Source of the DNA: Lepidodermella squamata
Taxonomy: Eukaryota; Animalia; Gastrotricha
Length of the DNA stretch: 64,000 nucleotides
Direction of reading: 5' to 3'
Assembly (NCBI GenBank): GCA_047495785.1
Contig: JBLDXI010000012.1
Location: 186,001 to 250,000 of the forward strand
Part shown: positions 36,114 through 58,977 of the stretch, in pieces
How the letters are laid out: every line of letters begins with the position of its first letter
How positions within the stretch are numbered: position 1 is the stretch's first letter
Made by a program: the position numbers and the translations under genes
Notes under the pieces: generated by a model
Databases searched by the model: none
What the model saw: only the letters and a program-made list of their open reading frames with translations
What the model was told of the DNA's origin: nothing

Positions 36114-36502
36114 TGTTCTTTTGTTAAAATGATCTCGCACATTTTAGTCACCCATATAAGAGGAGGTGTCAATCAATGCGTAGTAGAAGCACTTTGGTTA
36201 TAATTTATGCACTGAAAAACAATTCAGCGTGCGATTATCAGAGGGGGACTGGGCGGATCATCCCCAGCCAGTCCAGAAAAGAAAACATTTAAAACGTTTT
36301 AGAGCAGCTTTCAGCGGAAAATCTTCACTCGTATTCTTGGTTCAAATTACTTATAAAGTATCCTTGATGGCACCGTGAAAACGAAAACAATGACCCGAAA
36401 ACGAAAAATTATTTTACTGGTCACAAAACTAGTCTACATAGAAACATTTCACCCGTTACTATGGTTCAAAAAGTTTGAACGCCTCTTCGTTTTGTATCGA
36501 GA

Positions 36503-37144
36503 TTATTCCAAAATGTCGGTTTCATCTTCTGCCGTTTCTTCAGATCGCTTCTGAATATTGCTGTTATATTTCGATTCTGGCGCGTTGAAAAACCCGTAGC
36601 TGTAATCGGCCGGTTCAACTGGACGAACAGGCGGGGTTGTTTCTTCCTCGCGCTTTTCATACTCGTAGAATGAATCGTAATTCAACGAATTGCGCTGATT
36701 CATCATCTTCGCCAGAATATCGTCCAGGCCTTTATTATTCGGGCGGGTTTTAAGGTGGCTCGCTAGCATTTGAGGCGCTGGTTCTAGATCGGAGTAGTCG
36801 TTATTATTCGAAACTGACCGCTTTTTACGCTTCTCGGCAAACGAGTCGTAGTGAATCTGGTCGTTTTTAAGGAATCGGTGTCGATCCAGCAGGGTTTGGA
36901 TGAAAGCTGGGTCAACGCCGTTTGCGGCCAGAAATTCCGCAACAGCCGCTGCCTCGTTGGCTGTGTTAGATCTTTTTTCGTAGTACGAGTCATAATGAGC
37001 CACATCACCCCTCAGAAATTGCTGCTGAGTCATCAAATATCTAAAAATTGCCTCATCAATCGACTGCATCTCCTCCTGAAAGCTTCCCTGGCACATGAGA
37101 GCCAGAATAGTGGCGAAAATCGAAATTAGAGACGAGTAAAACAT
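36503..37144 (-). CDS. Multicopy prohormone, FLx5H[YF]DS[YF] peptide family
   Basis: Signal peptide; three related peptides each ending at EKR: HYDSYYEKR, HYDSFAEKR, NYDSFYEYEKR; RKKR site. Confidence 0.92.
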   Translation of the reverse strand: MFYSSLISIFATILALMCQGSFQEEMQSIDEAIFRYLMTQQQFLRGDVAHYDSYYEKRSNTANEAAAVAEFLAANGVDPAFIQTLLDRHRFLKNDQIHYDSFAEKRKKRSVSNNNDYSDLEPAPQMLASHLKTRPNNKGLDDILAKMMNQRNSLNYDSFYEYEKREEETTPPVRPVEPADYSYGFFNAPESKYNSNIQKRSEETAEDETDILE

Positions 37145-37893
37145 TCTAGAACTCTTGCAAAGAAATGATGATGAAGTTGAAAGTAAAAAAGTGGCTCAGC
37201 CGAATATAGTAACCTGTATTTTTGCGTCTGAGAAATCAAATGAAAGCCGAGTATATGCTTGGGCGAGAAGGCGTGGTATCACTATGCCTAGTTATAATTA
37301 AGTTACGCTATATGAGACATCCTGTTCGTTTACGACATCAGCTCACGGATCGTTCAACACAGTACATAGCTAGCCCATACCGTCTGCGGAGGCATCTATT
37401 TCCTGGCGAAAGGAGATTATTCACATTTTTTAAGTCGATTTGCTTCTTTCAAGCAAAAAAACAAGTGCCTGAAATTCTCAATGAAAAATATTGCTCAATC
37501 ACGAAAATTGCCCCTGAAAAATGTACCGAGCTGAAATTCCTGTAAAAAGAGGCGTGTTTACAGGCACTTATCATCATCAAACTTGTATTAAGTATATATT
37601 GGTGATGGGGAGTGTTTTCGATGGTTGGATCTGCAGTCGAATAGTCCGAGGAATTTCAGGAAAAATAAGTTGTTGAATCGAATTCCTTCAAATTAATTGT
37701 CGAGGAATGTCACCGCTGGTTCATGGTCTCAAATTTCACCCGAAGTTGACCTGGAAATGTTTGATTATCACCTTTAGTTGCATTCTAGAATTCAGGAAAC
37801 CGTGAGGGAGAAAAAAATCGGTACCTATATGTCAGCTTGATTTTATTAACAATTTGTTAACTATAATAATGTCTCGGTTTTTCGCTAAATATA

Positions 37894-38055
37894 CAGCGTA
37901 GCCAAACAATTCCGCAGGAGGCGAATTCGATGCGCATCATTTTAATAAGGAGTTTCATTGGCAAAAGAATGCTTGAAATTCTTCAACTTCTTAAAACTCC
38001 TAATTAAATTGATGCGCATCGAATTCGCCTTTTGCGAAATTTTTTGGCCACCCTG
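37894..38055. mobile_element. Hairpin MITE with Tc1/mariner-like ends
   Basis: ~62-bp imperfect arms CAGCGTAGCCAAACAATTCCGCAGGAGGCGAATTCGATGCGCATCA.. / ..TGATGCGCATCGAATTCGCCTTTTGCGAAATTTTTTGGCCACCCTG; TA at left flank only. Confidence 0.7.
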
Positions 38056-38178
38056 TTGACTAGATTCTTTCATTTGATTGTCTTTTGATCGAGTCAGGAA
38101 GGACAAATTTCAACAACACTGCAATTGCCAAATTTTGCACAAATTTACCATGCCAGTTAATGTTATGTGAAAATGGCA

Positions 38179-38385
38179 TCAATCATAATCCATCGGAGGC
38201 TTCCCGTTTTCTTGCCAAAACAGCTGCATTGGACCGCCCTTGTCAAAGTTTGCGTCGTCATGCGTTGGATGATTCATTAGGGCGTAGTGGAAGGTCATAG
38301 ATCGCTTTGCGATATTGCAGGTGGCAAAACCCAGAACAACGGCCAGTAGGACAAGGCAAAGTTGGAAAAAGTACTTAACGAACAT
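38179..38385 (-). CDS. Secreted peptide precursor
   Basis: ATG at 38385; signal peptide MFVKYFFQLCLVLLAVVLGFATC; KR site. Confidence 0.82.
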   Translation of the reverse strand: MFVKYFFQLCLVLLAVVLGFATCNIAKRSMTFHYALMNHPTHDDANFDKGGPMQLFWQENGKPPMDYD

Positions 38386-38827
38386 ATTGTTCAAATTGTT
38401 ATGAAGCACGAAATCCGGAGTAATTACATACCAATGAAATAGGACTAAGGACTATCGAATGTCCTGAAATTTGCCGTTTAATCTCATGACAATACTGCTA
38501 AAAATAGAAATAATATATCTTTTGGATGGAAATCAAAATTCCAGATGCGTCATTCCCCTGTCATGCGATGACTTGTTATTGTTGTTTTTGGCAGGCTTTG
38601 GCAAAATTCAGAAGCGTCAAATTACAAAACATGGGCCTTTAATGAATGTAAAGGCTAATAATACGGCTACTCCGTGCGAATGTGGGATGTCCCATTGCCT
38701 TTTGCGTCAGCCATTTTTTGCCGTTATACATGGCAATTATGTGGCTGGAGCCCAAAACAAACAATCCTGGTTTATCATGCATCATGAGAGACTAAGATCT
38801 TGTAATTAGCCACGCCCAATTTCGGAG

Positions 38828-38834
38828 TATAAAA
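38828..38834 (+). promoter_or_regulatory. TATA box of the DUF1566 gene
   Basis: GTATAAAAGG about 60 nt upstream of ATG 38892. Confidence 0.55.
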
Positions 38835-38891
38835 GGACCCTGTAAAAATATGGTGACATAATCTGTTTTCTCAAGATTTGAACCAGTGAAA

Positions 38892-40037
38892 ATGGCCTTG
38901 TTATTTCTGTTTATGATCTGCTTCTCGCGGCAAAGTGCTGCCGCAGCTGGGTTGACGTACCCTATCGTCGACACTGGTGTTCAGGACTTCACTAACGATA
39001 TCACGTACATATCAAAGCCGAACCCAGGCCAGGCTTACTACGGCCAGGATGGCAAATACCAAGGAAATCAACCCAGTTACAAGGACAACAATGACGGAAC
39101 CGTGACTGACCTCGTTACAGGTCTCATGTGGCAGAAGTCGATGGGCAGCAAGATGACCTATAACTCGGCGCTTAGTGCCGCTAAAACCTCACGCGTCGGA
39201 AATTACGCTGACTGGAGGGTCCCGACTATCAAGGAACTGTACTCCCTAATCCTGTTCACCGGTCAACTTGGCCCGAATGCTGCGTCGAAAAAGTTCATCG
39301 ACGATTACTTCGATCAACCCTATGGCAATACTTCAGCAGGCGAGCGGGACATTGATGCGCAAACTCTGAGTTCGACAATGTATCAAGGCTACGTCTTCGG
39401 CAACACTCAATGCAACTTCGGCGTCAATTTTATCGATGGTCGAATCAAATGCTACCCGCGCCACATGCCTTTCTACTTCAGATTTGTCCGCGGCTCGACC
39501 AACTACGGATTGAACGACTTTGTTTCAAACAAAGACGGAACAGTCTCTGATCGGGCGACTGGTCTAGTCTGGCAGCAGTCTGATAGCGGTAAGGGCATGG
39601 AGTGGAAAGATGCCTTGGCCTATTGCGAGAGCCTTGTCCTGGCTGGCCGGGATGATTGGCGTCTCCCGAACGCGAAGGAGCTGCAAAGCTTGGTCGACTA
39701 CAACCGAGGCCCGCAATCGACGAACACCGCCGCAATCAACCCGCTGTTCTCCGCCACTTCGATACCTGTGCCCAGTGGAGCGGCAAGTGCGTCGTCAGAG
39801 TTTGCTTTCTACTGGACCGGAACGACGCATAAGGACGGTCCTCAGCCTAATTTGGCGGCTTATGTGGCGTTTGGTCGTGCCTATGGCAAATCTTCGTCTG
39901 TTATTGACGTTCACGGCGCTGGTGCGCAGAGAAGTGACCCCAAAAGCACTCGGGGTCAAACTTACCCGCAATATTTCGGCCCTCAGGGTGACTTGAGGAC
40001 CGTCTACAACTTTGCACGATGCGTTCGAAACGCCTGA
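38892..40037 (+). CDS. Secreted tandem DUF1566 (Lcl C-terminal domain) protein, prokaryote-type
   Basis: Signal peptide; YPIVDTG..YYGQDG; two copies of NxDGTVxDxxTGLxWQ..WRxPxxKELxSL; C-terminal GAGAQRSDPK..GPQGD..YNFARCVR; intronless; AATAAA at 40123. Confidence 0.9.
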   Translation: MALLFLFMICFSRQSAAAAGLTYPIVDTGVQDFTNDITYISKPNPGQAYYGQDGKYQGNQPSYKDNNDGTVTDLVTGLMWQKSMGSKMTYNSALSAAKTSRVGNYADWRVPTIKELYSLILFTGQLGPNAASKKFIDDYFDQPYGNTSAGERDIDAQTLSSTMYQGYVFGNTQCNFGVNFIDGRIKCYPRHMPFYFRFVRGSTNYGLNDFVSNKDGTVSDRATGLVWQQSDSGKGMEWKDALAYCESLVLAGRDDWRLPNAKELQSLVDYNRGPQSTNTAAINPLFSATSIPVPSGAASASSEFAFYWTGTTHKDGPQPNLAAYVAFGRAYGKSSSVIDVHGAGAQRSDPKSTRGQTYPQYFGPQGDLRTVYNFARCVRNA

Positions 40038-40425
40038 AACTTCCAAACCATTTCCGTACAATAACTTAATGTACGCTGTTGATAAGCTGCTGATGAAATA
40101 ATATAATGCTGTGTCTCTTTTGAATAAAATTGGTTTTTTTCAATATTCAGCTCAGGATTTTTCAACCTTAAATTTCTGTCTCACCGCTTATAAGATCCTA
40201 CTCAAGTTAGGGGCGATTTGCTTTGATTTCGTCCAAGGAAAAGCAATCCATTGAGATCTAGATTAAATTGCTGAAACGAATTTCATCGTGCAAAACCTTG
40301 GCAAGAAATCAAAATGGAAAAAGAGAGTGAGGATGGGCTCCGAGGATCCAGCATAATATTCAAAAACACTGACGCTGCTCAGGCAAATCAATTTTTATTG
40401 CAATATATAATAGTTAAAATTCAAG

Positions 40426-40680
40426 CTATCGTCTTTTCTCGTTGTAATACGAATCGAAATGGATTTTAGGCCCAGTTAAAAAACGCTGATTAAGCTCCTT
40501 CATCACTTTGGACCACTTCGGAGGTCGCATTGCGACTGGAATTCCGTGGCCAATGTCCAATCCGTCTGGCATTTTAATTTTGAATCGCATCTGGCCGTTG
40601 GTCATCGCTAGCAGATCTAAAATTAGAAGACCTGTTATCAATGTTGACGCCGATTTTTCCAGCATTCTTTCAATTATCAT
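40426..40680 (-). CDS. Secreted precursor, FLx5H[YF]DS[YF] family
   Basis: Hydrophobic LITGLLILDLLAMTNG; C-terminal FLTGPKIHFDSYYNE-KRR; start may be 40665. Confidence 0.82.
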   Translation of the reverse strand: MIIERMLEKSASTLITGLLILDLLAMTNGQMRFKIKMPDGLDIGHGIPVAMRPPKWSKVMKELNQRFLTGPKIHFDSYYNEKRR

Positions 40681-41800
40681 AAAATTCTAATCGGAAAATT
40701 CCAAAGTTTTTCAAAAATAATAATTCAGGCCTAAGAGACGGAAATAGTAACAAATTTGTCTGAATTTTCTTGTCTGAAGTCTGAGTTGAATGAGTTTGTT
40801 TATAACTTGTCAATGACTCATTCTATGCCAAAAGTGACAATTGGCTTAGGAAACGCGATACTGCGCATTCCTGCGACAATCAATGCGACAAAAAATATTT
40901 CTCCGCTATTTTGGGAGCTAATATTTCTATAGTTGATAGCTACTTAAATATGTACGTCCATATAGTCGCAAATGAGTGATGAAAACTGACAGGACATCAA
41001 TTGACCGCATCCGATGTGCGTTGAAACCAGGCCGAAACAAGGGAACAAGTGAGTGGGCATCCTTCATTCAATTTAACATCGAACAAAAGCGTGTTTTTAT
41101 GTTTTCAAGTTCAAACTCCCATTCACGATAAATGTCAGATGGTGACCTTTCCTCAGGCGTGTTGCTGTCATCGGGAAACGTTTCGTCAGCTTTCATGCTC
41201 GAAAGACATCACGTTGATTCTGAATCAATATATTTCATATCGTCGTTCGCAGAATGAAGACAATTAAAATTTAGTCACGAAAGGTTCCTGAACCTAATGC
41301 CCCAGCTATGCTGAATTTAGCTCAATCCGACAATTTAAAAAGTATGCCTATTAATAATTTATTATTCAGTACCAGAATTCTGTGAAGGAGATGATTCATA
41401 GGCAATTCAATTAATGCGCGACTATCAGCGCGCAACCATTATCAAGAATCCGAACTAGTTTTTTCTTCCTACCTGGGGAATCCCAGATTTCCGGCAGAGC
41501 TAATAATAGATAATAGCTATAATAATGAAATGATATCCGAGCGAACTCGTGAAGCTTACCGCCCACTCTGACTTTCCGCTGCCGTCAATTTACAGCCTAA
41601 ATAGCTCGATATTTTATGAATGAAATGCCACCCCCATGGGTCATTAGACTGAACTTATAACGCCCCAGCTATATGTGTTGTAGTTACAAACACGTGAAGA
41701 ACAGCGCGCAGACAATCGATTTCAAAATAGCCGGCGAATGAGTTGCAGATTTTGTCCTAGACGTGAGAATTTTCTTAAATCTTCATAAACAACTTCATAA

Positions 41801-41864
41801 GTAAGTTGTCTCCAAATTGCTGGAACAAGTATTGAATATTGCTATTTTATTCTTATAATTTCAG
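41801..41864 (+). other. Probable 64-nt 5'UTR intron of the 41874 gene
   Basis: GTAAGT ... ATTTCAG ending 9 nt before the ATG. Confidence 0.6.
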
Positions 41865-41873
41865 CTTAACGAA

Positions 41874-42152
41874 ATGATCAGCATTTTGAATTTAATCCTG
41901 ATTGGTTACCTGTTTGACTTGGTCACTGGCCGACCTACTACTACTTCTGGCGAGCTCGGCCAACAATTTGCACCATTGCCCAACAAGCGACAGTCGATAG
42001 ATAGACCAACGCGATTTGGCAGGAAAATATCTTCCATCAACGATAGAAAAGTTAAGCAGATTCAAATAGTCATGTCCCACCGCCTGCAGCCTGCCCCTCC
42101 TTCCAATGCTTACATCATGCGACAACAAATCAGGGAACAAGCTAAAAGCTGA
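41874..42152 (+). CDS. RFamide neuropeptide-like precursor (pQSIDRPTRF-NH2)
   Basis: Signal peptide MISILNLILIGYLFDLVTG; KR-QSIDRPTRF-GRK. Confidence 0.85.
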   Translation: MISILNLILIGYLFDLVTGRPTTTSGELGQQFAPLPNKRQSIDRPTRFGRKISSINDRKVKQIQIVMSHRLQPAPPSNAYIMRQQIREQAKS

Positions 42153-42206
42153 TGTATATAGGTCTTTATTATGTGATATAAATTATTCAAGCTTGATGGA
42201 ACTTTT

Positions 42207-42515
42207 CTAGTTATTATTAAAAGATATGAAACTGTTCTGTTTTTTGTTCAATAGAGTTTGCACGGAATTCCCATCATCCTTCTTTGTTTTCTTGAGAGGT
42301 AGTCGTTTCCGGCCGATTTTGCTGTTTTTTTCCTGATATTTCGGGCGGAAAACTTTTGTTTTAGATGATCGGCGTTGTTGCTGATGAAGTATTGCATCTA
42401 TTTGCCGTTTAGCCACTCGCTCGAATACCAAAATTGTAAAGCAATTGGCAACTTCGAAATTCGCATGAATAAGAAAAATTCCCACAACGGCTAAGAAAAA
42501 TGCAATTCGACGCAT
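42207..42515 (-). CDS. Secreted basic precursor (KR..QQQRR..LNKKQ pair)
   Basis: Signal peptide MRRIAFFLAVVGIFLIHA; KR, RR and GRKR sites. Confidence 0.83.
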   Translation of the reverse strand: MRRIAFFLAVVGIFLIHANFEVANCFTILVFERVAKRQIDAILHQQQRRSSKTKVFRPKYQEKNSKIGRKRLPLKKTKKDDGNSVQTLLNKKQNSFISFNNN

Positions 42516-43070: not shown

Positions 43071-43379
43071 ATGAATCATTCTATAACAATTTTAGTAGTT
43101 TTTTTACTAGTTTCCAGTTTTTTCGTTGAATCTTTGGAACTACAGAGTGCTCTCAACGGGTCGAAACGGCTTTTCTCCGGTAAAGGATCGGCTCTTTCAA
43201 AACAAAAGCAGAAGAAAGTTATCGAACGCCTCGAAAGATTCATGTGGCAAAAATCTCCGCTCACGCAAGCCGACATAAACAACCCTGCTAAAATACCATG
43301 GCATCTACGGAAAACCGCGGATGCTATCCTCATTCGTCGATTCAAAGCTCTGAGTAGCAAAAACAAGAAAACGCCTTAA
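43071..43379 (+). CDS. Secreted basic precursor
   Basis: Signal peptide MNHSITILVVFLLVSSFFVES; KR site; TATA-like site upstream; AATAAA at the stop. Confidence 0.87.
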   Translation: MNHSITILVVFLLVSSFFVESLELQSALNGSKRLFSGKGSALSKQKQKKVIERLERFMWQKSPLTQADINNPAKIPWHLRKTADAILIRRFKALSSKNKKTP

Positions 43380-43462: not shown

Positions 43463-43726
43463 TTAAGTCGATCCTCGAAGACTATGCTTGGCTTGGGACG
43501 CTTCTCGTTCTGTAGACAACCATTTCGCTGATTTTGTCCCATCCAAAGATCTCAAGCTCAGCAGAATACGGCGACGTAGCTTGTTAGGCTTCCAATCTGA
43601 TAGACGACGGTTGCTCTCCGCTTCCATTCCAGCTTTCGATGGTTTCAACAACTCCTTGCTGGCCTTCGAGTCGCATAGCACGCATGCTACGCTCAGCAGT
43701 AGTAAGCAGATAGTTGCTTGATGCAT
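43463..43726 (-). CDS. Secreted peptide precursor
   Basis: Signal peptide MHQATICLLLLSVACVLC; RR and RRR sites. Confidence 0.83.
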   Translation of the reverse strand: MHQATICLLLLSVACVLCDSKASKELLKPSKAGMEAESNRRLSDWKPNKLRRRILLSLRSLDGTKSAKWLSTEREASQAKHSLRGST

Positions 43727-44042: not shown

Positions 44043-44294
44043 TTATGAGTCGAAATGCACGTCTTTTTGTGCCGAGGCCATTCTTCGGCTCCGGTCGTAA
44101 AACGAATCGTAGTGAACGTCACGGCCGACTAGGAAGCCGGGTTTTCCACGCATAAGAGCGCGTCTCAACGTTTGGCTGGCCAGGTATTCGATATCTTTAT
44201 TAGTCAGGCGAATGTTGTTGACGTAACATTTGGAGAAGCAGCAACAAAACGAGATGACCAATGCGGCAGGCAAAATAATTGAAATTCTAGCCAT
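44043..44294 (-). CDS. Secreted precursor, FLx5H[YF]DS[YF] family
   Basis: Signal peptide MARISIILPAALVISFCCCFSKC; FLVGRDVHYDSFYD-RSRR; second truncated copy DVHFDS*. Confidence 0.86.
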   Translation of the reverse strand: MARISIILPAALVISFCCCFSKCYVNNIRLTNKDIEYLASQTLRRALMRGKPGFLVGRDVHYDSFYDRSRRMASAQKDVHFDS

Positions 44295-56187: not shown

Positions 56188-58977
56188 TCAGTTGTCTTGG
56201 TTAGTATGAACGCCGTTTAGGTTTAACCCAGCTTCAACGGATGAAACCATAGCTTTCGGTTTCCTCAGGCTAAATCCACCCCCAGCGAATCGCTCAGTCC
56301 TAGGACGGCCGACTAGGCTAGGTAGCCGGCGGCCAACTCGTGTTTGAACGAAGAGGTGCCGATTCACGGCACTGCTACCCTGCCTTTCCTGCATCGCCGC
56401 TTGTCTAAGGATGCTGAAGCCATTTTGTGTAGCTGTGTTCTTCTTCTTCTCGACAAAGTACTTCTTTTTAGCATCGGCTAATTCTTGAGCGATACGATCC
56501 ACCTCGAACTTCGTTTCATTGTCTCGCCGTTCGAACATGTTCAACTCGCCAGCCATCGCTTGCATTTGACGATTTTGTTTACGCAGAACCACTTGATAGC
56601 TTGAAATTTTGTCAGCAACTTCGAAGCCGGGTTGCTTGGCTAGAATTCGCTTCAACTCCAGATATAGACGATCTTTCTCCTCGATTATGTTATTGGCCTT
56701 CGCGAGCATTTGGACCTTGCGTATCAAACGCTTTTGTAGATACTGAGTTTTCTTGATGAGTTCGAATGCAGACGGGTCATGGCCCTCAAGTTTCCGCCAC
56801 CGATGGATATTAAGAGGGCGGCTGAGTTCTTCCTCTAGAGCTTTTGACCTGGCCCGCTCGCGGAGAAGTTCTCGATGCACATGGTAGTACTCATTCTTCA
56901 GCTCTTCAGATTCACGAGCAACTATTTTAGATTTCGTCAAGTCTCGTCGGAGGCGCCGTATTTCGATCTTAAGGAGGCGGATATCCTCGATTCGGTCGTG
57001 GTAAGACATTTCGCCCTTCCTCATTACCGATTGCTGTATCTTGATCTTCTCGTAGAGCAGAGCCAACTCATCGTTTCTTCGGATAAGCTGCGATCCAAGA
57101 ATGTCGCGTTCAGATGTGATATTTTCGATTTCTTTCTTTAGTTTCACGCAAGTTGCTTCACAATCTCGGATGATTCTCAGCAGTTTATTGCTCTCCATTT
57201 GTTGGCGTTGAATGTAGGACTTTGACTCCATCATCTGTTCCTTGATTCTGATCAGCTCAGTGCTCAACATGTCGCGCTCAGATGTGACGTTCTGCTTCTC
57301 GAGTCGTTCTTTCACAGTAACAGCCTCTCGGTCAGCAATTTCCTCTCGCAGTTGGTCGATGGTGTGATTAGTTACCAGTAGTTTCCGCTTCATCTCAGTC
57401 ATTTCATCTTGACTTTCCATCAAGTTCTTCGAGTACAAGTTGCGATCGCTTCGAACAGCTTCGTACAGATTCATTTGCTGTTTCACTTTAGTTTCGAGCT
57501 CTGCAAGCTTCTTCTTCAGGTCGAAGATTTCGTTCTCACGAACTTTGACCTCTTCCATGTAGGTGAGCGTCTTTTGGGTCAAATCAGCAGCTTCGTTGAT
57601 GTAGCGATCACGGTCTTTTTCTAGCTGGTAAATGATCTGCCGCTGCTTTTGTGCCTCGGCTCGGTAGTTGGCGATCTCGGCATCCATATGCCTCATGGTC
57701 TGATCACCAGCTTTGGCGATCGTGGCTTGCCTGACAGCCTCATTCGATGCTTTTCGCAGGTTCGAATCAATCAAGTCCCTTTCTCGAGCAGCATTGGCGA
57801 TTTGCTTACGATCAGCCTCCATCTGCCGCTTCATATTGTCAATAGTCTTCTCCAGTGTGGATATCTGCGTGGCGTACATTTCCTTTTCTTCGTCAGCTTC
57901 TTTCTTCGCCTCTTCTAGCAGATGAACCTTGCGTTGGAATGTATCGCGCTGGCGATTTATTTTTACGATCTCCATTTTTGCTGCCGTGATGTTCTCTTCA
58001 ACAGTTTTGTAAGCAGTTTTCAATTCCGTGAGCTCTTCAGTTGCTTTTACCGCTCGACTAGCCGCTTTATCGTAGTCCTCCTGAGCCTTCGCCAACTGCT
58101 CCTGAGCTAATTCGGCCTCTTTTTGCGATCGATCGGCAATGATTTTCTGCTCTTTAAACAGATATTCTTGCTGTTGCCGTTCTGATTTCAGTTTTTCAAG
58201 TTGTACTGATAGCGTTTTGATTTCTTCGCCTTTCGCCTCGGCATCTTCTTTTGTTTTACGCAGTTCAGTCTCTAGCTTTTCTCGCCTCCTTATCTCTCGC
58301 TGAATTTCGGCTTGCTTCGCCTGCATTTCGTAGGTCACCTGCAGAATTTTCCCGTTTAGATCTTGTCTTTCGTCTTGAAATTGCCGGGTGTCTTCGACTA
58401 TAGCCGCCATCTTCGTCTTCAAATCTTCGACTTCATTCTTCTTCTCCTCAACAGTTGCCTCGAGCTCGCTTTTCATTTTCATCAGGTCCTTGTAGGAAAA
58501 TTTGCCGTTAGCCATTTCGAAGCCGCCGCTGACCTCCAAAATTTTTGTCAACTTGACGATTTCAGCTTTCAGCTCAGTGATTTTCTCGCGACTGTTCTCC
58601 TCCTTCCGCTTCATGTCGTCAATCATGTCCCACGCGCGTTTGTTCTCGCGCTGCAGCGACGTAATCGAACTCGCTTCATCGGCCAATGCAGCCACTCTCG
58701 ACGTGTTTTTGATCAGCTCGGCGTGTAGATCGCGGCATTTGTTCATCAGCCGCTTTTCGGCCTCTCGGCTCTTCTTCAGCGCCCGGTAGAGCCTTTCATA
58801 TTCGTGCTTTACGCGGTCAGACTTCTCAGTGCCAATAACTTCGGTAACAGCGACGTTGAACTCATGCACTAACTCTTCAAGCGTACTTTCGTCGACGCTG
58901 AGTTTGACATCGCCGATCGTGTCATCAATCCGCTCCTTACTCGACGACTTTCTAGACCGGTCCGAACTAGAAGACAT
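56188..58977 (-). CDS. CFAP58: Cilia- and flagella-associated protein 58 (CCDC147), intronless
   Basis: 929-aa coiled coil with CFAP58-family motifs YEAVRSDRNLYSKNL, ERDILGSQLIRRNDELALLYEKIKIQQS, ALEEELSRPLNIHRWRKLEG..LQKRLI. Confidence 0.9.
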   Translation of the reverse strand: MSSSSDRSRKSSSKERIDDTIGDVKLSVDESTLEELVHEFNVAVTEVIGTEKSDRVKHEYERLYRALKKSREAEKRLMNKCRDLHAELIKNTSRVAALADEASSITSLQRENKRAWDMIDDMKRKEENSREKITELKAEIVKLTKILEVSGGFEMANGKFSYKDLMKMKSELEATVEEKKNEVEDLKTKMAAIVEDTRQFQDERQDLNGKILQVTYEMQAKQAEIQREIRRREKLETELRKTKEDAEAKGEEIKTLSVQLEKLKSERQQQEYLFKEQKIIADRSQKEAELAQEQLAKAQEDYDKAASRAVKATEELTELKTAYKTVEENITAAKMEIVKINRQRDTFQRKVHLLEEAKKEADEEKEMYATQISTLEKTIDNMKRQMEADRKQIANAARERDLIDSNLRKASNEAVRQATIAKAGDQTMRHMDAEIANYRAEAQKQRQIIYQLEKDRDRYINEAADLTQKTLTYMEEVKVRENEIFDLKKKLAELETKVKQQMNLYEAVRSDRNLYSKNLMESQDEMTEMKRKLLVTNHTIDQLREEIADREAVTVKERLEKQNVTSERDMLSTELIRIKEQMMESKSYIQRQQMESNKLLRIIRDCEATCVKLKKEIENITSERDILGSQLIRRNDELALLYEKIKIQQSVMRKGEMSYHDRIEDIRLLKIEIRRLRRDLTKSKIVARESEELKNEYYHVHRELLRERARSKALEEELSRPLNIHRWRKLEGHDPSAFELIKKTQYLQKRLIRKVQMLAKANNIIEEKDRLYLELKRILAKQPGFEVADKISSYQVVLRKQNRQMQAMAGELNMFERRDNETKFEVDRIAQELADAKKKYFVEKKKNTATQNGFSILRQAAMQERQGSSAVNRHLFVQTRVGRRLPSLVGRPRTERFAGGGFSLRKPKAMVSSVEAGLNLNGVHTNQDN

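Follow-up and report, generated by a model that had tools for sequence, protein, structure and literature searches.

The window, by which we mean the whole 64-kb stretch of DNA that was analysed, carries a gene that was very probably acquired by the animal horizontally from bacteria, and that has since been domesticated, expressed and kept under constraint. In the course of events that we propose, an invertebrate animal would have taken up a bacterial double-DUF1566 gene by horizontal transfer and retained its use; the acquired gene would have gained a TATA promoter, a favourable context around its start codon, a signal peptide of the eukaryotic kind and a poly(A) site directed by AATAAA, would be made as a monocistronic mRNA of ~1.3 kb, and would yield a secreted protein of ~40 kDa with two C-type-lectin-like Lcl_C/DUF1566 domains. 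A domesticated gene of foreign origin had been suggested at this position by an earlier sequence-only reading, and the suggestion is borne out by relatives that are all bacterial among the named matches listed, by a polyadenylated cDNA, by variants that are mostly synonymous, and by the retention of the invariant residues of the family.

The uninterrupted reading frame in the mechanical ORF list spans 38886-40037 (+), with an ATG at 38892 that gives 381 aa and stands in the context gaaaATGg. Pfam assigns two stretches of the 381-aa protein to Lcl_C (PF07603, formerly DUF1566) with 147.3 bits and E 3e-43, the Pfam gathering cut-off being 34.9 bits, and NCBIfam returned sub-threshold matches alone, to the adhesins Lsa25 and FimD. 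Since 94-100% of the ORF aligns colinearly with bacterial proteins, it contains no intron, in agreement with the earlier description of an intronless gene with two DUF1566 stretches, although the lack of introns is weak evidence for transfer because the CFAP58 gene of the host is a single ORF as well. The motifs picked out in that description (YPIVDTG, GQD, GPQGD and GAGAQRSDPK, the last within HGAGAQRSDPK) are all present in the translation and occupy family columns that vary little or not at all. A family-conserved mature start, ..TYPIVDTG, follows directly on the predicted signal peptide, after which we infer that the protein is cleaved. The GC content of the ORF is 52.8% (GC3 60.7%) and that of its flanks ~40%; host coding sequence has 46-47.5% (GC3 52-55%), and Flavobacteriaceae homologues have 38-39%. 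No further copy of the gene was found within the 64-kb window. Positions of the gene, its parts and its neighbours are collected in Table 1.

Table 1. Features of the DUF1566 gene and of the surrounding DNA (positions in the window)
Feature	Position	Strand	Basis or remark
Coding sequence, 381 codons plus stop, no intron	38892..40037	+	ORF list, Pfam, colinearity with bacterial proteins
TATA box TATAAAAG	38828..38835	+	Direct reading; 64 nt 5' of the ATG
Predicted eukaryotic-type signal peptide, residues 1-20: hydrophobic core, then Ala run	38892..38951	+	Sequence; helix 2-14 in the model
First Lcl_C/DUF1566 domain, ~residues 64-203, C-type-lectin-like fold	39081..39500	+	Pfam; VIA-align model range 17/64-202
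Second Lcl_C/DUF1566 domain, ~residues 211-381, with invariant HGAGAQRSDPK / GPQGD insert	39522..40034	+	Pfam, best stretch 216-332
Polyadenylation signal AATAAA	40123..40128	+	Sequence
Poly(A) addition site	40143	+	X2 contig, 19 untemplated A; 15 nt past AATAAA
213-aa precursor with signal peptide, three FL-x5-HYDS[YF]-x-EKR-type units and dibasic sites	36503-37144	-	Sequence; well covered in X2 and X3
Foldback (MITE-like), 63-nt arms 87% complementary, 38-nt loop	37893-38056		836 nt 5' of the ATG
Small ORF, signal-peptide-like start (MFVKYFFQLCLVLLAVVLG...)	38179-38385	-	Divergent, ~500 nt upstream of the DUF1566 gene
84-aa ORF with FL-x5-HYDS[YF] unit	40426-40680	-	ORF list
64-nt GT..AG intron	41800/41865	+	Spliced out in X2 and X3
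92-aa signal-peptide ORF, just after the 64-nt intron	41874-42152	+	ORF list
Small signal-peptide ORF	42207-42515	-	ORF list
Small signal-peptide ORF	43071-43379	+	ORF list
Small signal-peptide ORF	43463-43726	-	ORF list
Small signal-peptide ORF with HYDSF and HFDS units	44043-44294	-	ORF list
CFAP58, single uninterrupted 929-codon ORF	56188-58977	-	Pfam CFAP58_CC, 2e-101

An AlphaFold model made from 64 sequences has a mean pLDDT of 75.5; its quality is good from residue 60 to residue 300, and pLDDT falls to 52-60 over residues ~330-370, a segment that coincides with the most conserved C-terminal motif. PDB sequence and profile searches with the window protein gave no match. Using structure, Foldseek found tandem C-type-lectin-like receptors (mannose receptor, E 2e-4, probability 0.97) and the head of Lcl (8q4e, probability 0.99), and VIA-align gave this same head (Z 11.2, with an rmsd of 3.1 over 119 residues and 21% identity), Bdellovibrio Bd2740 (8oks, Z 8.6) and Yersinia InvE (5n40, Z 8.5), with many C-type-lectin-like domains (CTLDs) of lectins in the next rows, together with FGE-like enzymes at Z 6.5-8. 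The lectin- or adhesin-like character ascribed to the protein in the sequence-only reading holds for the fold alone, which is C-type-lectin-like and closest to the Lcl head. The second domain (residues 211-381) also has a VIA-align row against the DGR variable protein 5vf4; the gene was rejected as a DGR target, as there is no template/variable repeat pair in 38300-40700 and no reverse-transcriptase-sized ORF beside the gene.

Two better-known groups of proteins resemble the window protein in part. Legionella pneumophila Lcl (8q4e) shares the DUF1566 C-type-lectin-like fold and a secreted or extracellular location, which is predicted in the case of the window protein, but the window protein is without the collagen-like repeats and the N-terminal coiled coil of Lcl and has two tandem domains against Lcl's one. 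With neither a collagen Pfam match nor a GXY run, it was rejected as an Lcl orthologue or Lcl-type collagen-like adhesin. The multi-CTLD receptors of animals (mannose receptor, Endo180, DEC205) are alike by Foldseek in their tandem arrangement of CTLDs, whereas the TM-scores are low (0.22), the window protein is of bacterial origin, and it has no Pfam Lectin_C domain. A canonical animal C-type lectin was likewise rejected, there being no Lectin_C match at E<=0.01 and no EPN, QPD or WND in the translation.

The DUF1566 head of Lcl binds sulphated glycosaminoglycans via a positive surface, and the authors of that study propose carbohydrate recognition as a generic role of DUF1566 (PMC11162425). 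If bacterial surface proteins with this domain are taken as a guide, the most plausible role of the product, with a likelihood somewhat short of even, would be that of a secreted binder of carbohydrate or of another anionic polymer outside the cell; candidate targets of such a binder would be microbes, or the animal's own matrix or secretions. The basic pI and the three extra cysteines described below point in the same direction. The main functional rival is that the protein is an enzyme and not a passive binder, and that the animal took over the gene because its product acts chemically on a substrate that is conserved. We consider this unlikely, although several observations speak for it: the CTLD-like scaffold also houses catalysts of the FGE/EgtB/PvdO type, VIA-align lists PvdO (Z 7.5), CarF (7.1), SenA (7.0) and an FGE paralogue (6.8), and the family alignment, which draws on many phyla, has 88 columns without variation and 91 that barely vary, many with charged residues (D, E, H, R, K, Q); 88 residues fixed across phyla would be less typical of an adhesin than they are of an enzyme. 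These Z values are, however, no higher than those of plain lectin CTLDs, and the best VIA-align matches are the adhesin heads 8q4e, 8oks and 5n40. Moreover, neither Pfam nor NCBIfam gives an enzyme match for the 381-aa protein, and the bacterial genes have no conserved operon partner at 81 loci.

Relatives of the protein are abundant in bacteria. A word search returned 8000 significant matches, and the best 120 of these cover 94-100% of the query at 54-61% identity; about three quarters of the 120 are without a name, and all that have one are bacterial (Flavobacteriaceae, Marinilabiliales, Ignavibacteriales). The collection searched contains no identical or near-identical protein. The architecture had been called typical of bacterial and archaeal proteins, of which the bacterial part stands; no archaeal relative was seen among the best 120 of the 8000 matches. 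No eukaryotic or viral relative was found in the word search (best 120 of 8000) or in the ESM Atlas feature and structure searches; the Atlas feature clusters are 96-100% Bacteria and the structure clusters are all 100% Bacteria. In bacterial species genomes, with one genome per species, relatives are encoded by at least 562 stretches, the best 80 of which come from at least 13 named phyla, with Bacteroidota, marine Gammaproteobacteria, Bacillota, Chloroflexota, Lentisphaerota, Myxococcota and Verrucomicrobiota among others. The closest among the matches listed, P0001, lies in a dense same-strand row of bacterial genes with a PIN/FitA pair, a GH92 gene and an esterase gene, and P0043, a neighbour of the window protein in the tree, lies in a dense bacterial gene row similar to that of P0001. 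P0043 is the same as locus L083 (GCA_001757125.1, MDTD01107228.1), on a bacterial-looking contig of 20 kb; the assembly, with contig numbers above 100,000, would be either a metagenome or a large eukaryotic assembly with bacterial sequence inside it. Across 81 bacterial loci no neighbouring gene recurs beyond close relatives.

The nearest known system is formed by bacterial proteins of ~390 aa with double Lcl_C/DUF1566 domains, annotated as 'Lcl C-terminal domain-containing protein' (Algibacter, Formosa, Lacinutrix, Psychromonas and Victivallaceae MAGs), which are colinear with the window protein over the full length and 51-63% identical to it. The identity to bacterial members of several phyla is within this same range, and is about equal to that among the bacteria themselves. 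Common to both are the YPIVDTG mature start, the two domains and the 88 invariant residues. The window protein differs in being encoded by an animal, with eukaryotic signals and poly(A) and without a lipoprotein, T9SS or SLH anchor, and in having a basic mature protein, three extra cysteines and a longer branch. Bacterial members of the family often have T9SS sorting tails or SLH domains, indicating surface display. In the literature, we found no studied member of this bacterial ~390-aa subfamily, and none of the searched papers that mention DUF1566 reports it from an animal.

The position of the window protein among its relatives was examined in three trees. In a quick tree of 121 rows it forms a single long branch (1.31, where the median is 0.25) without a supported sister, and across trees its branch exceeds the median by a factor of 2-5. 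When labelled genome loci are included the family splits into two bacterial clades, A and B, with clade B containing Bacteroidota, marine Gammaproteobacteria, Bacillota and others, and the window protein groups with clade B (SH-aLRT 99 in the quick tree, 100/98 in a careful tree of 52 rows). One further starred node (98/90) of the careful tree places it within clade B, but trees that keep it apart from every clade-B bacterium were not rejected by AU tests, either with 97 rows (p 0.83) or with 52 (p 0.49). In the phylogenetic check attached to the earlier proposal, the window protein groups with a bacterial clade, and a position outside all clade-B bacteria is also allowed. The trees are unrooted with a single animal sequence, and nesting inside the bacteria is not formally provable from them; nor do the three trees and two AU tests point to a donor. 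The case for transfer therefore rests mainly on distribution, with hundreds of bacterial species on one side and one animal lineage on the other, together with the affinity to one bacterial subclade.

A less direct origin, either as a eukaryotic gene of great age that nearly all other lineages have lost or by arrival through another eukaryote or a virus, is in our view very unlikely. The AU tests do allow branching at the base of clade B, the branch is long, and the GC content of 52.8% differs from that of the host flanks and also from that of the Flavobacteriaceae homologues. However, the word search (best 120 of 8000) and both Atlas searches are empty of eukaryotic and viral relatives, identity to bacteria of several phyla is about as high as that among bacteria, and vertical descent would require loss in essentially all other eukaryotes.

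After its acquisition from bacteria the gene appears to have been kept under purifying selection, as is supported by the pattern of variation and of conserved positions. Of the 13 best-supported variants within the ORF, 10 are synonymous third-position changes; several are at half depth in the DNA-like run X1, as fits alleles. The window protein retains every one of the 88 residues that do not vary among 63 bacterial homologues. Among columns conserved at >=90%, it matches 89.9%, compared with a bacterial median of 97.8% and a minimum of 91.7%. Other changes since the transfer concern charge and cysteines: the mature protein has a pI of 8.2, where the bacterial median is 5.3, and C174, C187 and C245 replace T, G and A, respectively, of 57-60 of the 63 bacterial members. 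The three gained cysteines could form disulfides, with C174-C187 and C245-C377 as the predicted pairs, and we hypothesise that a C245-C377 bond, C377 being common to the window protein and the bacterial members, would imitate the helix-to-last-strand disulfide that is classic for CTLDs. It is hardly credible that the gene, though expressed, has no function and drifts as an insertion of fairly recent date whose transcription is accidental, as might be read from the long terminal branch and from a match to conserved columns that is below the bacterial minimum. This reading is countered by 381 intact codons, by the full retention of invariant residues, by the predominance of synonymous variants, and by a proper TATA box, start context, predicted signal peptide and poly(A) signal.

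Residence of the gene in the animal genome, and its expression, were examined by aligning four public runs with 36400-42300; all consist of assembled contigs, and their depths are not comparable as expression levels. Run X1 is DNA-like, with depth in 30 of 30 bins, and its depth over the gene is similar to that over the flanks. An X1 unitig covers 39996-40516 without a mismatch and extends past the stop codon into 3' flanking sequence. In the 5' flank, a 2-nt indel that X1 shows with half the depth at 38773 indicates two haplotypes across this flank. X1 may be the source sample of the assembly itself, and the junctions are thus not independently proven by it; with that reservation, the X1 unitigs cover both junctions, where a chimera would lack spanning sequence. 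Runs X2 (2015) and X3 (2014) come from two separate studies, different from that of X1, and are cDNA-like: their depth is limited to 38764-40142, to the peptide gene at 36400-37187 and to the downstream spliced gene, with zero or near-zero values between. Over the DUF1566 gene the cDNA-like depth begins in the bin 38764-38960 and is zero in 38370-38763.

The two cDNA-like runs also bear directly on the transcript. An X2 contig matches 39996-40143 without a mismatch and then continues with 19 A where the genome reads tattca, such that it consists of the end of the coding sequence, 106 nt of 3' flank and a poly(A) tail. Through this contig, a bacterial-type coding sequence is seen joined to a non-bacterial flank in mRNA, independently of the assembly. 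The TATA box at 38828 and the AATAAA at 40123 that had been proposed as control signals can both be read in the sequence, the tail of 19 A starting 15 nt past the latter, and the poly(A) transcript that had been put forward as a check was found in this same contig. X3 contributes pieces without mismatch over the gene. Diverging contigs in both X2 and X3 represent transcripts that are ~90% identical, and the gene was probably duplicated after its arrival in the animal. Elsewhere in X2, a loose end at 36465 carries what we take to be the reverse complement of the SMART cDNA oligo, and low-depth joints between opposite strands (37478/37569, 40499/40589) are either hairpin-like inverted repeats or cDNA artefacts. 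A tblastx search of the gene flanks detected no remnants of bacterial DNA, and around the gene only short pairs at chance level were found in place of direct repeats or target-site duplications.

That the gene is bacterial contamination or a chimeric join in the assembly, for which one could cite the GC contrast between ORF and flanks, the purely bacterial relatives and the possible identity of X1 with the source of the assembly, can be dismissed as extremely improbable, given the 2015 cDNA contig with coding sequence, flank and untemplated poly(A), the mismatch-free 2014 pieces, the two haplotypes in DNA at flank-like depth, the expressed and spliced animal genes within 0.5-2 kb on both sides, and a host coding GC that is similar to that of the ORF.

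The genomic neighbourhood is of the animal type that the sequence-only reading had described, with a dibasic-site peptide precursor, small signal-peptide ORFs, a 64-nt GT..AG intron and CFAP58. By its sequence, the 213-aa precursor resembles those of neuropeptides or pro-hormones and would represent a family that is not recognised so far. CFAP58, whose best named relatives (cnidarian and mollusc) are 46% identical, with one ENA protein at 55%, such that the protein collection holds no close relative of the host, confirms that the host is a ciliated eukaryote. The AT skew is strongly negative (-0.18 to -0.24) at 56-60 kb. Nineteen other ORFs of the window gave no Pfam match. The MITE placed ~0.8 kb upstream of the gene was recovered as the foldback listed in Table 1, and the summed X1 contig depth over 37779-38172 (8.5-15.5 thousand, as compared to ~50-170 beside it) identifies it as a very abundant MITE-like element. 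At the small divergent ORF upstream of the gene, X2 has depth in 38173-38369, and one of its contigs breaks at 38168 with 76 unmatched letters, possibly through splicing.

What ties the DUF1566 gene to the secreted-peptide genes around it is physical position alone. It is conceivable, though we consider it improbable, that a bacterial surface module has become a component of an animal secretion, co-regulated with the peptide genes, with the gained cysteines and the basic charge reflecting retuning for the secretory pathway; in that event the protein would serve, for example, as a carrier, as a matrix or adhesive component, or as a microbe-agglutinating factor.

Expressed bacterial genes are known in animal genomes, as with the foreign genes of bdelloid rotifers and the Dae amidases of ticks. 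The gene described here is like these in combining a bacterial coding sequence with eukaryotic expression signals, and in being secreted, selected and duplicated, to the extent that these properties are predicted or probable in the present case. Since expressed foreign genes are already known in animals, no new category is opened. It is nonetheless a well-documented example of a bacterial gene at work in an animal, with adaptations that can be seen in its promoter, start context, predicted signal peptide and poly(A) site, and others in possible new disulfides, a charge shift and a probable duplication. With it, the DUF1566 C-type-lectin-like module joins the components that animals have taken over from bacteria. 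The donor family is spread over hundreds of bacterial species, unusually conserved and uncharacterised, and a tractable eukaryotic copy could help to reveal what its members bind or do. If the protein does prove to be a component of an animal secretion, then its study in the animal would provide the first functional handle on a large and conserved bacterial family.
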